Shown one piece after another: positions 23,829 through 28,403 of a DNA stretch of 64,000 nt. The stretch is taken from the sequence record PP408249.1; one strand, written 5' to 3'. Under the pieces are notes generated by a model that searched no databases, had not been told where the DNA came from, and saw only the letters and a program-made list of their open reading frames with translations. Numbering within the stretch: the first letter of the stretch is position 1; the number at the start of each line of letters is the position of its first letter. The translations under genes and the position numbers were made by a program.

Positions 23829-26203
23829 TATAGATTTACCCAGGATGAAAAATATACTTGTAATGATGCTAATCCCGGATCGTCATATTCCCTTGAATAA
23901 TCTTGATAACCGGTTCCGTCGTTGTTATTAAAATTACTGTTTAATGTACTAGCAACGTCAAAGTATGATAATGTTTTGTTATAGCAATATATAGACACTG
24001 CTCTAAATGCTTTAGAATAGTTAACAACATCTCCCTCTATGGCACCTACGTGCCCCTCTGACATACATTGTGTCATAACAACATAATTTGTATTTGTTGG
24101 ACGCAAAGTAGTAAAATAGAATCTATATAATCCTGTTCCTAATTTTGTTATAGATAAGTTTAAAGTGTTTATTACAAAGAAGGAACCGCCCGTAAGGTTT
24201 GTGTCTGAGAATGATGCCAGACCTTTTGGCATATCTATTTCTACTTTCCAGTCATATCCTAAATAAGTTACTAATTGGTCCCTGCTAGCAAAACGAACAT
24301 AATTGTCATTGGTATTATTGTTTCTAAATGTTACTTGGGCATTCACTGACATAGGGTCTGCATTAGTGTATGTCATACTAAATGAAGATGCAGATAGATA
24401 CCCGCCGTTTGCATCAGGAAGATTAGAAGGTGTATATCTTACTGCTATTGTGTTGGCACCCGGACTAGTTGAATTTATTTTACCGTTAAGTAAATATGAA
24501 TCTACAGCAGTACCGTTCCACGCCAATGCTCCTACTTCGGCAGCGGTCGGTGGCCGTCTGTCGTGGAATGCTAAATTACCAGAACCTATATATAGATTGT
24601 CTGCTTTAAATGATATGATACTATTTGCTACTAATGGTGTATTTATTGCACCAGTATTATAGAAGACAAACTGTATTCCGTTATCTAATGTATTGTTAGT
24701 AACCATATTCATACTAACAGCAGTAGTATTATTTTGAGAATGAATATCTGTAACAGTACCGCCTAGTATTAGACTAGTTCCGTAATTGGGTTTATATGCT
24801 AATCTGAAACTATTATCATTCATTACTATTACATCTCCTGATGTAACAGATGAAGTTATAGACGAAGTAACAAACGGTGTTTGTTTTTTAACGTAAGCTG
24901 TGCTATCTAACCCGCCTAGTAATTCTGAATCTGGAGAAGAACTATTTGATTTATCTACGAATAGATTATTATATTCTTGGGAATTGTATGTTTCGTTTTT
25001 ACCATATATAGATAAATTATTTCTAGCGGCTGCCTTATTTAAAACATCTGCTAGGTTCAGTGTTTTATCGAATGTATTTACGTTATCTACTAACCCTAGA
25101 CCTATCTGTTCTTTTGTAACTTGATGAGGGTCGTTTTTATCATTAATGTGAGCACTAAGTAAATCTAATGTGCCCTGAGTTAATGGATGCCATTTTGCTA
25201 GATTTGTAAATTCACCGGGTTCTCCTACATATACATAAAATGATCCTTGTGTCCCGGGTCCCTCTGTTTTATACCATAGTTGTCCTTTTATAGCATTTTG
25301 GGGAGGAGAAGAACTAGCAAAGTTTTCTACCATCCATATCATGGATTCACTAAATGCTTTTTCGTAACCTGCTGAATTATATCCTGGCATAGATATAGAA
25401 AGTAAGTTAGAAGAAATATAGTTATCAGGTACATTTAATCCTGGAATCTTGTTATAGCACTTTGCAGAAAAAGATAATACCTCGAAAGTACATAAATCCT
25501 GATTACCCGATACAAACCCAAATAATGCAGATGTTTTAAAATCAGTTAGTGTATCATCGTTTAGATCTATAGTAAACGCCGAGTTATCTAATATTACGTT
25601 AGAATTCCAGTCGGAACACTTAGCTGTTATTTTATTATTTTCTCTAATTACATTAATAATTGTATATCTATTTGACCAACCGAGATACCCTGTAGATGAT
25701 GTAGAAGTAGCCCCAGCAGGACTATTAATTCCTATTGTTTTACTAGAAAGAATCGTTCTAGTTTTATTGTTATCTAAAATTAGTTCCCAATTCCTTCCGG
25801 ATCCGCTGCTAGATGTGTTACCCAATGACCGGACAGCAGATATATATTTTCCTTTTTGTCCAGCAACACACAAACCTAACCTGTTATTTCTTATAGAACT
25901 ACTAGATATTTTTATTGTAATATTAAAATCACTAACTTGATCCATGTATAACGCATAGCTATATAACGATGCTGCATTAGTTGATATAGGATCAGGAGTT
26001 CTTGTGTAAGAAAGAATAGAAGTAGCTGACCACCCCGCAGTGACGCCGCCTATTGCTTTTCCTTCCCATGCATCATACAAGTTAACTGATGTAGCTTTTG
26101 ACCAATCGGAAACAACTTCTTGGTAACTAGGAAAAGAAGTTAGTTCTCTATTTTGGTAATAATTATTTGATAAACGTAATTCGTAACCCATGACAATGCT
26201 CAA
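23828..26203 (-). CDS. Tail fibre paralog 1 with extra N-terminal beta-rich domain
   Basis: Same modules after ~250 extra residues; late promoter complement at 26216-26223. Confidence 0.75.
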   Translation of the reverse strand: MSIVMGYELRLSNNYYQNRELTSFPSYQEVVSDWSKATSVNLYDAWEGKAIGGVTAGWSATSILSYTRTPDPISTNAASLYSYALYMDQVSDFNITIKISSSSIRNNRLGLCVAGQKGKYISAVRSLGNTSSSGSGRNWELILDNNKTRTILSSKTIGINSPAGATSTSSTGYLGWSNRYTIINVIRENNKITAKCSDWNSNVILDNSAFTIDLNDDTLTDFKTSALFGFVSGNQDLCTFEVLSFSAKCYNKIPGLNVPDNYISSNLLSISMPGYNSAGYEKAFSESMIWMVENFASSSPPQNAIKGQLWYKTEGPGTQGSFYVYVGEPGEFTNLAKWHPLTQGTLDLLSAHINDKNDPHQVTKEQIGLGLVDNVNTFDKTLNLADVLNKAAARNNLSIYGKNETYNSQEYNNLFVDKSNSSSPDSELLGGLDSTAYVKKQTPFVTSSITSSVTSGDVIVMNDNSFRLAYKPNYGTSLILGGTVTDIHSQNNTTAVSMNMVTNNTLDNGIQFVFYNTGAINTPLVANSIISFKADNLYIGSGNLAFHDRRPPTAAEVGALAWNGTAVDSYLLNGKINSTSPGANTIAVRYTPSNLPDANGGYLSASSFSMTYTNADPMSVNAQVTFRNNNTNDNYVRFASRDQLVTYLGYDWKVEIDMPKGLASFSDTNLTGGSFFVINTLNLSITKLGTGLYRFYFTTLRPTNTNYVVMTQCMSEGHVGAIEGDVVNYSKAFRAVSIYCYNKTLSYFDVASTLNSNFNNNDGTGYQDYSREYDDPGLASLQVYFSSWVNL

Positions 26204-26286
26204 TATTCTTTATGATATTTATCATAGTAATTTTAGGTAAATTTATGAAATTATATTTATTTTCTTTTATAAAACATAAAATATAG

Positions 26287-26315
26287 TTGTTTAATTTAAC
26301 TAGGTGTAATATAAT
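26287..26315 (+). promoter_or_regulatory. Sigma70-type promoter
   Basis: TTGTTT-17-TATAAT; next plausible + ORF starts ~470 nt downstream. Confidence 0.55.
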
Positions 26316-26321
26316 TTGTAG

Positions 26322-26590
26322 TGTATGCAATGCATTTGCATATATACCAAGCACTGTATGGTGAGTTGCATACAGCGATGGGCAATCGTAGTGCCGACAT
26401 TGATCTAGTATGATCTGAAATAGGTCCCTTACGCCGAGGTAAGGCTATCTGGCACGGATAGTAGTGGATGTGTATGTTCGAAATAACGATATCATATTTT
26501 AGACATACGCCGCCATCAGCATTTTTAGTTTGCAACTGCTGATATCTTTAAGTTTTGTTGATGGCCGGGGGTGGTGCCCAGTGCATTTTT
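26322..26590 (+). ncRNA. Candidate structured non-coding RNA, family unknown
   Basis: GC-rich island with at least 6 stems and two loop-distal complementarities, flanked by promoter and T tract. Confidence 0.55.
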
Positions 26591-26786
26591 ATTGTAGAGT
26601 TAATGTGTAAAAGAAATAAATGTGATTAAAGACGAGGTTCTTTTCTAAAACTGTTTCTAAAAGTAATTGCGTTAAAACCTTGGGTTTAATTAATGTATTA
26701 TATATGCTATATAATTAGCCCTACATAAACATGTATGTTTAACTTGTTTAGTTAACAATAAAATATGCAAATTAAGGAATTAACTG

Positions 26787-26954
26787 ATGACTAAATTTAA
26801 TAAAAAATCGTTAGATACATATGAAGATAGAGAAGATTATAGAGATGAAGAAACCGGTGACAGGTTAAATAATAAGAAATCTGAACCTAAAAAAAATAAT
26901 ACTGATTATAAGCCGTTTGGTAAAATTACCAACCGCTATAATAATGATAATTAA
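26787..26954 (+). CDS. Small charged hypothetical protein (55 aa, below track cutoff)
   Basis: AAGGA RBS; MTKFNKKSLDTYEDREDYRDEE... Confidence 0.55.
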   Translation: MTKFNKKSLDTYEDREDYRDEETGDRLNNKKSEPKKNNTDYKPFGKITNRYNNDN

Positions 26955-26982: not shown

Positions 26983-27402
26983 GTGATAATAATGATAGAA
27001 ACTATTTTAACTTCGAGAGTATTTGCTTATGTAGTTTGCATAGGTATAATATCGTTAGCAATAACGCTCTCATATCAAAAATATCAAAAGCTTATTAGTG
27101 TAAATAAATCTCTTGAACAATCTATAGAAACGTTAACTAATGATAATAATTCATTGCAGTTAACTATTTCTGAACAAAATAAAAAGATTGAAACATATAT
27201 TCAACTTAGATTATATGAAGAATCTATAGCCAAACAAAAAGCAGAATCACATGCTGCTTTAGAAAAACAATTACAAGATACTAAATCTCAGTTAAATGAA
27301 TTAATAGAACGTAGAAAGAATGAGGCACCAAATGATCAAAGTGTGTTATGCTCTACTGTCAGGATTGATCCTGCTTTACGCAACTGGATGCTCGCAAACT
27401 AA
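26983..27402 (+). CDS. Inner-membrane spanin (Rz-like)
   Basis: N-terminal TM helix, coiled-coil, C-terminal Cys, overlapped by lipoprotein gene. Confidence 0.7.
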   Translation: MIIMIETILTSRVFAYVVCIGIISLAITLSYQKYQKLISVNKSLEQSIETLTNDNNSLQLTISEQNKKIETYIQLRLYEESIAKQKAESHAALEKQLQDTKSQLNELIERRKNEAPNDQSVLCSTVRIDPALRNWMLAN

Positions 27403-27649
27403 ACCAGTTAAATCTGTAGTGATAGAAAAGGAAATAGTTCCTGTTCTTCCGCCAGATTCTCTTATAGTATATTGTTACGAAAATGAAAATCCCGATACGT
27501 ATGGCGAAACGGTAGGTTCGGTTAAAAAACTAAAATCTATAATTAAAAATTCTTGTAATAAAAATATGAAAGATATAGAACTTTGGAAATCTGAAGTTAA
27601 AAAACTATATCCTACTGCGAATGACTTAGAAATAAAAAAGCAGCCTTAA
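27320..27649 (+). CDS. Outer-membrane lipoprotein spanin (Rz1-like)
   Basis: Lipobox LLYATGC, Pro-rich PVLPPDSL, overlap in other frame; start may be 27332. Confidence 0.7.
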   Translation: MRHQMIKVCYALLSGLILLYATGCSQTKPVKSVVIEKEIVPVLPPDSLIVYCYENENPDTYGETVGSVKKLKSIIKNSCNKNMKDIELWKSEVKKLYPTANDLEIKKQP

Positions 27650-27660
27650 GCTGCTTTTTT
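27634..27660. terminator. Bidirectional terminator
   Basis: AAAAAAGCAGC/GCTGCTTTTTT between convergent lysis genes. Confidence 0.8.
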
Positions 27661-27909
27661 ATTGTCCGAGTCACATGGGTTTATTTTATCTTTTATATTC
27701 TGTTTTATATAACTTCCTGCAATACCTAGTATACTAAACAAACATACTAATCCTATAAATACGTGAGTTTCTATCAAAGAACTAAATCCAATAATTGCCG
27801 GAACACCGTATTGTGCAATAGCCATTAATAAATTCACTACATGGAAAATATAAGAATATCTTTTATATATTTTAGTCCAATTATCTGTTAATTTAAGTTT
27901 CCTAAACAT
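27646..27909 (-). CDS. Putative holin
   Basis: 87 aa, two hydrophobic segments, KL.DNW..YK.YS N-terminus, overlaps endolysin stop. Confidence 0.6.
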   Translation of the reverse strand: MFRKLKLTDNWTKIYKRYSYIFHVVNLLMAIAQYGVPAIIGFSSLIETHVFIGLVCLFSILGIAGSYIKQNIKDKINPCDSDNKKAA

Positions 27910-28403
27910 ACATTCCTCTCTTCAGTTCTTCGTTTTACTAATCCTTTTAAAACAACTCCTCCTGCTTTAGTCCATTTTAGCAATTCGTTGCATGCTCCTA
28001 CTTTATCGCCTGCATTTAATTTTCTAAGCATTGTGGATTGATTTCCATTTTTTAATGTGACAAATCCGTCTTTAACCCCTTTTTTCCCCGGTCCTACGTT
28101 ATATAAGAACGAAAGAAATGCAGCATGTTCGTATGGCGTTAATTCTACCTTTACTACATTTGTTAAGATTTTATTATGTTCTAAAAGATCTTTTGCTAAT
28201 TGATCCAAACATTGGTCGTCTGTAAATTGTTGTCCTTTTTTTAGCTCAGGTCCGGTGTGACCGTAGCAAGATGTTAAAATTCCTACCGGATCTACATATA
28301 CCTCGTTTACTTTACCTTCAAACGGAGCCAATAATGCTCCTCCTAGTGCAATTGCACCGGATAATCCCATTGCAATTAATTTTTTTCTAATATTATTATC
28401 CAT
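27888..28403 (-). CDS. GH24 lysozyme endolysin with SAR-like N-terminus
   Basis: Gly/Ala-rich LIAMGLSGAIALGGALL then FEG...YVDPVGILTSCYGHT (E-D-T triad), GLVKRR. Confidence 0.9.
   Translation of the reverse strand: MDNNIRKKLIAMGLSGAIALGGALLAPFEGKVNEVYVDPVGILTSCYGHTGPELKKGQQFTDDQCLDQLAKDLLEHNKILTNVVKVELTPYEHAAFLSFLYNVGPGKKGVKDGFVTLKNGNQSTMLRKLNAGDKVGACNELLKWTKAGGVVLKGLVKRRTEERNVCLGNLN

Follow-up and report, generated by a model that had tools for sequence, protein, structure and literature searches.

Structured RNAs of phages and the ncRNA003 locus

The stable RNAs C and D (species 1 and 2) of phage T4 are small, stable, non-tRNA RNAs of a large virulent phage; they are processed out of the transcript of a tRNA gene cluster and, to our knowledge, their function has not been established. 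In phage lambda, the pR'-tR' "6S" transcript is a short, terminated RNA produced ahead of the lysis genes, and HK022 put and EAR are RNA-based antiterminators. Here we analyze an RNA element at positions 26322–26590, on the plus strand, of a 64,000-nucleotide stretch of sequence record PP408249.1 (the window), which belongs to a PA5oct-type (Wroclawvirus) jumbo phage of Pseudomonas aeruginosa; Wroclawvirus is the sole genus of the family Arenbergviridae. The element is a non-coding, structured-looking plus-strand RNA gene whose foldability and hairpin number exceed those expected by chance.

The closest described system is the corresponding locus of PA5oct itself. The element aligns with 98.7% identity over 601 nt to positions 102931–103530 of MK797984, where the plus-strand feature EST35_0168 is annotated as "putative lncRNA; ncRNA003; annotation based on RNA-Seq data", with a start at 103065 that corresponds to window position 26334. 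Strand-specific RNA sequencing (RNA-seq) placed this non-coding RNA (ncRNA) among four transcribed regions devoid of open reading frames (ORFs), and Table 1 of that study gives its extent as 103065..103368, about 304 nt, so that the feature maps to window positions 26334–26637 (Lood et al. 2020, PMC7318152). The same authors added 49 coding sequences (CDSs) to the genome on the basis of RNA-seq, and at this locus they annotated a plus-strand RNA and no CDS (PMC7318152). Locus, strand, flanking genes and sequence are the same as those of the window element. The RNA is not a new discovery because its locus coincides with that of ncRNA003: what a first-pass annotation, made from the sequence alone, had taken for a new ncRNA was already catalogued, and the discrete plus-strand transcript that it called for is on record. 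The publication differs from the present analysis in recording transcription and the lack of an ORF, without promoter, structure, nucleotide-resolution boundaries or function.

Comparison with the T4, lambda and HK022 RNAs is by analogy. In contrast to T4 RNAs C and D, the window RNA is preceded by a promoter of its own, and ARAGORN finds no tRNA gene near it. It has no sequence or Rfam similarity to lambda 6S, HK022 put or EAR. Were it to act as a leader, it would resemble lambda 6S as a promoter-proximal short RNA with a terminator just upstream of same-strand lysis genes; however, the holin-like and endolysin genes lie here on the opposite strand, and the RNA is separated from the same-strand genes by 196 nt of variable spacer, in which there is a further −10 hexamer. 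The likeness to the GOLLD, ROOL, HEARO and raiA-type orphan RNAs may be no more than general: the element shares with them the character of a G+C-rich, multi-helix phage ncRNA of unexplained function in AT-rich surroundings, but it yields no Rfam match at E ≤ 10, is restricted to a single genus and has none of the covariation support on which those classes are founded. At ~265 nt, it is also shorter than ROOL and GOLLD, whose lengths we take to be ~580 nt and ~800 nt, respectively. As an entity, the RNA is already known under the name PA5oct ncRNA003; its kind falls into no RNA family described so far.

Purifying selection on the RNA

To assess conservation, the locus was aligned across the window, nine distinct phage genomes and six ENA and Logan contigs reached via the neighboring 55-amino-acid (aa) gene, which amounts to 16 sequences, seven of them distinct. 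The region is 100% identical to that of Pseudomonas phage vB_Pa-PAC2 and 97–99% identical to that of ten other PA5oct-type records; the 16 collected sequences are 97–100% identical. Within this narrow range, variation is unevenly distributed. A core of 147 nt (26368–26514) shows no change in any of the 16 sequences, and the RNA as a whole (26322–26590) has 8 variable sites in 269 nt, versus 16 in the 196 nt (8%) of the adjacent non-coding spacer (Fisher P = 0.018; P = 0.002 when the core 26340–26565 is compared with the spacer). The spacer also carries single-base insertions and deletions and, in one contig, a 12-nt deletion. In nearby genes, 1.5–3.8% of sites are variable. The RNA is under strong purifying selection, stronger than that acting on the adjacent spacer.

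Of the eight variable positions, six fall in the 3' linker or in loops of the predicted fold, and the other two are the partners of a single base pair, 26515:26562, in stem G of the predicted fold. This pair is A-U in the window and PAC2, G·U in most sequences and G-C in MIJ3, ERR3279683 and SRR24309835, and it is the only pair that changes while remaining paired. It favors the plus strand as the functional one, since the G·U state would be a C·A mismatch on the minus strand. The SRR24309835 contig (Logan) carries the T to C change at 26562 without the three other nearby changes of MIJ3, and it has the 12-nt deletion at 26642–26653, which suggests a second origin of the change or recombination. 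The behavior of 26515:26562 is consistent with a plus-strand RNA structure, without carrying statistical weight: the covariation test is without power because 63 of the 64 tested pairs never vary in a set of sequences so alike.

Promoter and ends of the transcript

Upstream of the element lies a sigma-70-type promoter (26287–26315, plus strand) composed of TTGTTT (26287–92), a 17-nt spacer and TATAAT (26310–15), as the first-pass annotation had described. Both hexamers are invariant in the 16 sequences, and the only variable sites, 26299 and 26302, fall in the promoter spacer. PA5oct is reported to depend on the host polymerase (PMC7318152), and a 2018 preprint describes PA5oct start sites with TTGAC/TATAATA promoters. 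The distance from the −10 hexamer places the probable start at ~26321–23, some 12 nt upstream of the start of the RNA-seq feature (26334), which thus also lies 12 nt inside the start originally assigned to the element. A similar offset is seen for PA5oct ncRNA004, whose feature starts ~18 nt past a sigma-70-like −10 hexamer. The proposed GC-rich island is also borne out, with a G+C content of 38–48% inside it and 12–25% in its flanks.

The element ends in a terminator-like arrangement (26579–26590) in which CAGUGC (26579–84), the 3' strand of a closing stem, is followed directly by A and the U5 tract (26586–90), the T tract noted at the outset. The partner of this strand, GCACUG, lies 220 nt upstream. 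A simple terminator scan found no plus-strand terminator at the 3' end of the element; it leaves this end unscored because the "loop" of the stem would be 220 nt long. The RNA-seq feature itself ends beyond the T tract, by 47 nt according to the paper or by 348 nt according to GenBank, where the feature is 604 nt long and ends at 103668 (window ~26938, inside the 55-aa gene) instead of 103368. The two ends differ by exactly 300 nt; one of the two sources contains a typographical error.

Predicted fold

The plus strand of the element has a predicted minimum free energy (MFE) of −88.9 kcal/mol (z = −2.81), a value equaled or bettered by 1 of 200 dinucleotide shuffles; that of the minus strand is only −66.6 kcal/mol. 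Local hairpins with short loops and 6 bp or more of uninterrupted pairing likewise far outnumber those in 2000 dinucleotide shuffles (P ~0.005). The first-pass annotation had listed ten complementarities, comprising stems and loop complements. All ten are present where they were placed, and all are of the Watson-Crick type except for one G·U each in 26445–50/26456–61 and 26470–77/26503–10. As a single structure the list holds in part: the closing stem P1 and hairpins A, D, F and G are recovered in the predicted ensemble (pairing probability p = 0.67–1.0), but hairpin B (26376–79/26385–88; 0.06), hairpin E (26445–50/26456–61; 0.01) and the alternative stem 26515–21/26537–43 (0) are not. The listed stems cannot all coexist, because the end stem 26351–56/26579–84 overlaps the hairpin beginning with 26354–60 by 3 nt, and C26579 is needed both for the end stem and for the first proposed pseudoknot.

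The predicted RNA opens with a 5'-terminal hairpin of 9 bp and a 5-nt loop (26322–26344), in which loop position 26332 varies between G and A. It is followed by the 5' strand of P1 (26351–26356), whose successive pairs with 26579–84 have p values of 0.85, 0.85, 0.81, 0.67, 0.38 and 0.01, and by hairpin A (26354–26375; 7 bp, 8-nt loop), whose inner 5 bp have p = 0.96–0.97 and whose loop position 26367 varies. The 5' hairpin and hairpin A (together 26322–26375) are near-duplicates of the form UGUAUG...UUGCAUAYA. Segment 26322–30 can pair either with 26336–44 or, with perfect complementarity, with 26366–74, and these mutually exclusive pairings could act as a switch. The hairpin B region (26376–26402) is invariant and may fold either as the CGAU/AUCG stem with loop GGGCA of the first-pass annotation or as the nested CGAUG-GGCA/UGCC-CAUUG helix of the MFE and alifold predictions. 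The next region (26403–26469), also invariant, forms in the MFE, centroid and alifold predictions a long irregular hairpin with stem D (26427–32/26439–44; p = 0.99–1.0) at its tip, in place of the three small hairpins, E among them, into which it had been divided. Hairpin F (26470–26510; p = 0.84–0.99) consists of an 8-bp base with an A/U-rich extension and has GUUCGAAAU in its loop, and hairpin G (26512–26565; p = 0.85–1.0) has a base of 7–10 bp that holds the pair 26515:26562. A G-rich 3' linker (26566–26578), the least constrained part of the RNA, connects hairpin G to the 3' strand of P1; its positions 26566, 26570 and 26572 are changed in MIJ3 and ERR3279683.

Two pseudoknots had been proposed to tie this structure together, and the complementarities on which they would depend exist: GGGCA (26380–84) with UGCCC (26575–79), and GUGCC (26391–95) with GGCAC (26451–55). 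All 20 nucleotides are invariant in all sequences, which places the pseudoknots beyond comparative testing. The motifs GGCA and GUGCC each occur twice, so that several pairings are possible. In the predicted ensemble, GGCA (26381–84) pairs locally with UGCC (26392–95), and the single long hairpin of 26403–69 uses the same bases as the second pseudoknot. Enforcing the originally listed hairpins yields −72.0 kcal/mol, versus −78.9 kcal/mol for the nested helices, a cost of ~7 kcal/mol before any gain from a pseudoknot. Five-nucleotide loop complements are frequent in shuffled sequences too, and the measured excess (P ~0.005) is confounded by the larger number of hairpins in the element. The pseudoknots thus found no supporting evidence beyond complementarity itself, and from these predictions alone neither the nested nor the pseudoknotted model would be preferable.

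Searches for known families and relatives

Rfam 15 gave no match at gathering thresholds across the window. At E ≤ 10, a search of 26150–26800 (651 nt) returned a single SAM-V match, located over the promoter and at chance level (E = 2.2; 18.8 bits versus a threshold of 41 bits), and a search of the element alone (26340–26595) returned none. ARAGORN found no tRNA or tmRNA gene in the whole window. The initial impression that the element bears no hallmark of tRNA, tmRNA, RNase P, SRP or intron agrees with these results, which revealed no known family; RNase P, 6S, tmRNA, group I introns and small ribozymes were ruled out for lack of any Rfam or ARAGORN signal. A T-box leader was also considered and rejected. 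The linker segment GGGUGGUGCC (26568–77) is superficially like the T-box consensus. However, it abuts the T tract instead of preceding a terminator, the Rfam T-box model gives no match, and the likeness fails on conservation, because MIJ3 turns UGG into CGG at 26572.

No relative was found outside the genus. Searching 50,697 phage records with blastn (word size 11) matched only 11 Wroclawvirus records; blastn against a plasmid collection gave no match, nor did exact 22-mer and 17-mer scans of IMG/VR. The 16-mer GGGCAATCGTAGTGCC has 27 matches in IMG/VR, none of them resembling the RNA beyond the 16-mer and most of them from one unrelated, coding-looking family. The pattern GGGCA-N4-TAGTGCC-N40–70-GGCAC-N6-TAGTG, with stems left free, had no match in the JGI metagenome, viral or genome (185,579 species) collections, and the pattern GAAATAGGTC-N6-GCCGAG-N6-CTATC had none in the metagenome or genome collections. 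A route through synteny led no further: the N-terminus of the neighboring tail fiber and the Rz spanin are without relatives outside the genus (5.8 billion proteins, IMG/VR), and YqeY-domain proteins offer no synteny anchor because their homologues are scattered over unrelated large phages.

Searches of the window for targets of an antisense RNA were negative. The best exact matches in the window are AT-rich stretches of 14 nt (E = 0.07), and a crude duplex screen against the 75 start regions in the window, with the host and the remaining phage genome outside the search, gave nothing beyond shuffled controls. Replication-origin iterons were rejected since the intergenic region contains no convincing direct repeats. 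The heptamer TTGCATA occurs 31 times in the window, versus 18 expected, a count reached by 0 of 100 shuffles, with a cluster at 26324–26372 and a further copy at 26764; a regulatory motif of the type TTGCATA or TGTAT..ATACA was nevertheless discarded, as most of the other heptamer copies lie inside genes without common context. The element is presumably no RNA mimic of the P. aeruginosa CRISPR repeats, with which it seems to share only a few bases.

The remaining PA5oct ncRNAs were compared with the element as well. Neither ncRNA001, ncRNA002 and ncRNA004 (MK797984 8263–8498, 21951–22401 and 246116–246734) nor the rest of the window shows sequence similarity to ncRNA003 that would indicate paralogy. 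All three are also G+C-enriched islands, with ncRNA002 reaching 61% G+C, and their matches to Rfam are weak, at chance level and below gathering thresholds. Of the three, ncRNA001 and ncRNA002 reach a high abundance, at 1–5% of phage reads.

Genomic context

The element sits within a 583-nt intergenic gap. To its left, a 791-aa tail-fiber ("YomR-like") gene on the minus strand starts at 26203. To its right, an AT-rich, fast-evolving spacer (26591–26786) separates it from the plus-strand 55-aa gene (26787–26954), which begins 196 nt past the RNA; a second −10-like TATAAT (26710–15), itself invariant, lies in the spacer upstream of this gene. The next two plus-strand genes, which overlap one another, encode an Rz-like i-spanin of 139 aa (26983–27402) and an Rz1/LysC o-spanin of 109 aa (27320–27649; PF23793). 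Beyond the spanins lie, on the minus strand, genes for an 87-aa holin-like protein and a 171-aa endolysin, and the lysis cassette as a whole spans 26983–28403. Both spanins carry only the label "structural protein (ESI-MS/MS)" in the PA5oct record.

The product of the 55-aa gene is highly charged and probably disordered. It is represented by a single identical protein sequence on 24 contigs (NCBI, ENA and Logan), and its protein cluster has no further member. The gene has four variable nucleotides, of which at least three are silent, as the loci that carry them encode an identical product. The ORF has the appearance of a genuine small gene on which purifying selection acts.

A stand-alone RNA gene or a leader

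We favor, tentatively and with somewhat less than even confidence, the explanation that a stable structured ncRNA specific to PA5oct-type (Wroclawvirus) phages is encoded here by a gene that stands alone, and that this RNA acts in trans through its shape, probably via protein binding. According to this model, host sigma-70 RNA polymerase would start ~6–8 nt past the TATAAT at 26310–15, and the RNA would open with a protective 5' hairpin. The terminal stem 26351–55/26580–84 would then clamp a multi-helix junction of about five hairpins into a closed domain, and the A-U5 sequence (26585–90) right after the 3' strand of the clamp would end at least part of the transcripts. The most likely trans activity of the folded RNA would depend on recognition of its shape by a protein of the phage or the host, rather than on antisense pairing or catalysis. 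Loops are conserved near-absolutely, like the stems, which fits sequence-specific recognition. The spacer that separates the element from the next gene, AT-rich, tolerant of insertions and deletions and equipped with its own TATAAT, supports a gene that stands alone. The lack of a coding signal on either strand of the element also counts in favor of an ncRNA.

Several observations weigh against this explanation. No homologue was found outside one genus, which leaves it without independent evolutionary support, and there is no statistically meaningful covariation, with 63 of 64 pairs invariant and 363 of 500 shuffles scoring as high. The stem that would serve as terminator joins distant strands and escaped a standard scan; were the GenBank end of the feature correct, transcription would continue past the T tract. 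The model also depends on a partner protein or target that is so far hypothetical. Finally, expression is very low: ncRNA003 accounts for 0.01% of phage reads early, 0.05% midway and 0.03% late in infection (PMC7318152).

The main rival to a stand-alone RNA, one that we consider possible and on balance rather unlikely, is a cis-acting structured leader or attenuator, in which the same promoter would drive the 55-aa and Rz/Rz1 genes and the folded element with its T tract would set the level of read-through. The three genes that follow, the first of them 196 nt downstream, lie on the plus strand as well and are counted as lysis genes. The 604-nt GenBank feature would run from the element across the spacer and cover most of the 55-aa CDS; the terminator is atypical, so plausibly leaky or conditional. 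The two pairings available to 26322–30, as well as hairpin A and the full-length P1, are mutually exclusive in the manner of an attenuator. However, the feature in Table 1 of the paper, at 304 nt, ends before the 55-aa gene, and the locus is described there as ORF-less (PMC7318152). The 196-nt spacer evolves faster than any other stretch of the locus, tolerates a 12-nt deletion and has an invariant TATAAT of its own at 26710–15, and the element has no Rfam match to a leader, riboswitch or antiterminator family. We know of no antiterminator protein in this phage. The choice of the ncRNA003 3' end decides between a stand-alone RNA and a leader.

Other explanations

A non-functional relic is improbable. 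On this account, the element would be a GC-richer remnant, either of a decayed gene or of a foreign fragment, with a weak, chance sigma-70-like promoter and incidental hairpins. Very low transcript abundance, the lack of homologues and the lack of significant covariation are what such a remnant would show; promoter-like hexamers around the locus number 11, versus 9.9 expected from shuffles, and the available genomes are so alike that conservation is weak evidence. Against a relic stand the unchanged 147-nt core in a locus where 8% of spacer sites and 1.5–3.8% of sites in nearby genes vary, and the avoidance of stems by substitutions, the sole stem change being compensated, seemingly in two backgrounds. 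Foldability and hairpin number beyond those of shuffled sequences argue in the same direction, as does the lack of any protein-like remnant in any frame.

More speculatively, and with only a slim chance of being correct, the element could found a new class, so far restricted to this genus, of compact pseudoknotted phage RNAs with an activity of their own; it could then be a ribozyme, a scaffold or decoy for a host or phage protein important for infection, or a protein-independent antiterminator of the spanin genes.

It is very improbable that the locus is instead a minus-strand gene for a small protein, the first of a leftward tail-fiber operon. The ORF in question (79 aa; 26296–26535, minus strand) overlaps the RNA and has the orientation of the tail-fiber genes. 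Automated pipelines annotate it as a hypothetical protein in five genomes (PAC2, Cassandra, Deifobo, Paride and Ettore, with 96 aa in Ettore; records PP408249 and OR805292–OR805295). It is open in all 16 sequences, and two of its three substitutions are silent third-position changes, three being too few to inform. However, its codon log-odds score of −0.05 per codon falls short of 0.20, the first percentile for pieces of real genes of this phage cut to the same length (real genes score 0.45 ± 0.13), and the G+C content at its third codon positions is 0.35, versus 0.22. It would start at a TTG codon without a Shine-Dalgarno sequence. It matches no Pfam or PHROG family, and phmmer against 1.84 billion representative proteins found only the ORF itself and repeat-type matches in proteins of 406–3386 aa. 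The plus-strand RNA annotated here by the PA5oct authors, with no CDS, and the G·U state of 26515:26562, which fits a plus-strand RNA, both speak for the other strand. Conserved coding, which the first-pass annotation had named as a result that would speak against an RNA, was thus not found, and judging from codon usage and the lack of homologues, the ORF looks like a spurious annotation artefact.

The least probable explanation is that the two proposed pseudoknots hold together a new RNA that cleaves itself or is catalytic in some other way, an idea for which we found no evidence: although both invariant 5-nt complementarities exist, and the size, closed multi-helix architecture and lack of a known family would be compatible with a large ribozyme, the motifs are repeated and allow several pairings, nested pairing of the same bases is predicted to be the more stable (−78.9 versus −72.0 kcal/mol), neither pseudoknot shows any variation that could serve to test it, no known ribozyme motif is among the Rfam matches, and the context has no rolling-circle element, intron or adjacent processing site that would call for catalysis.

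Implications for PA5oct-type phages

The PA5oct-type phages are candidates for therapy and a model for jumbo phages that depend on host RNA polymerase. To the published record of ncRNA003, the present analysis adds a conserved promoter, a predicted closed multi-helix fold, the functional strand, purifying selection above that on the adjacent spacer, and evidence against the overlapping ORF that is annotated as a protein. The RNA is an orphan limited to one genus, and comparative methods can take its analysis no further. If a function is found, ncRNA003 would be among the very few characterized structured RNAs of virulent Pseudomonas phages.

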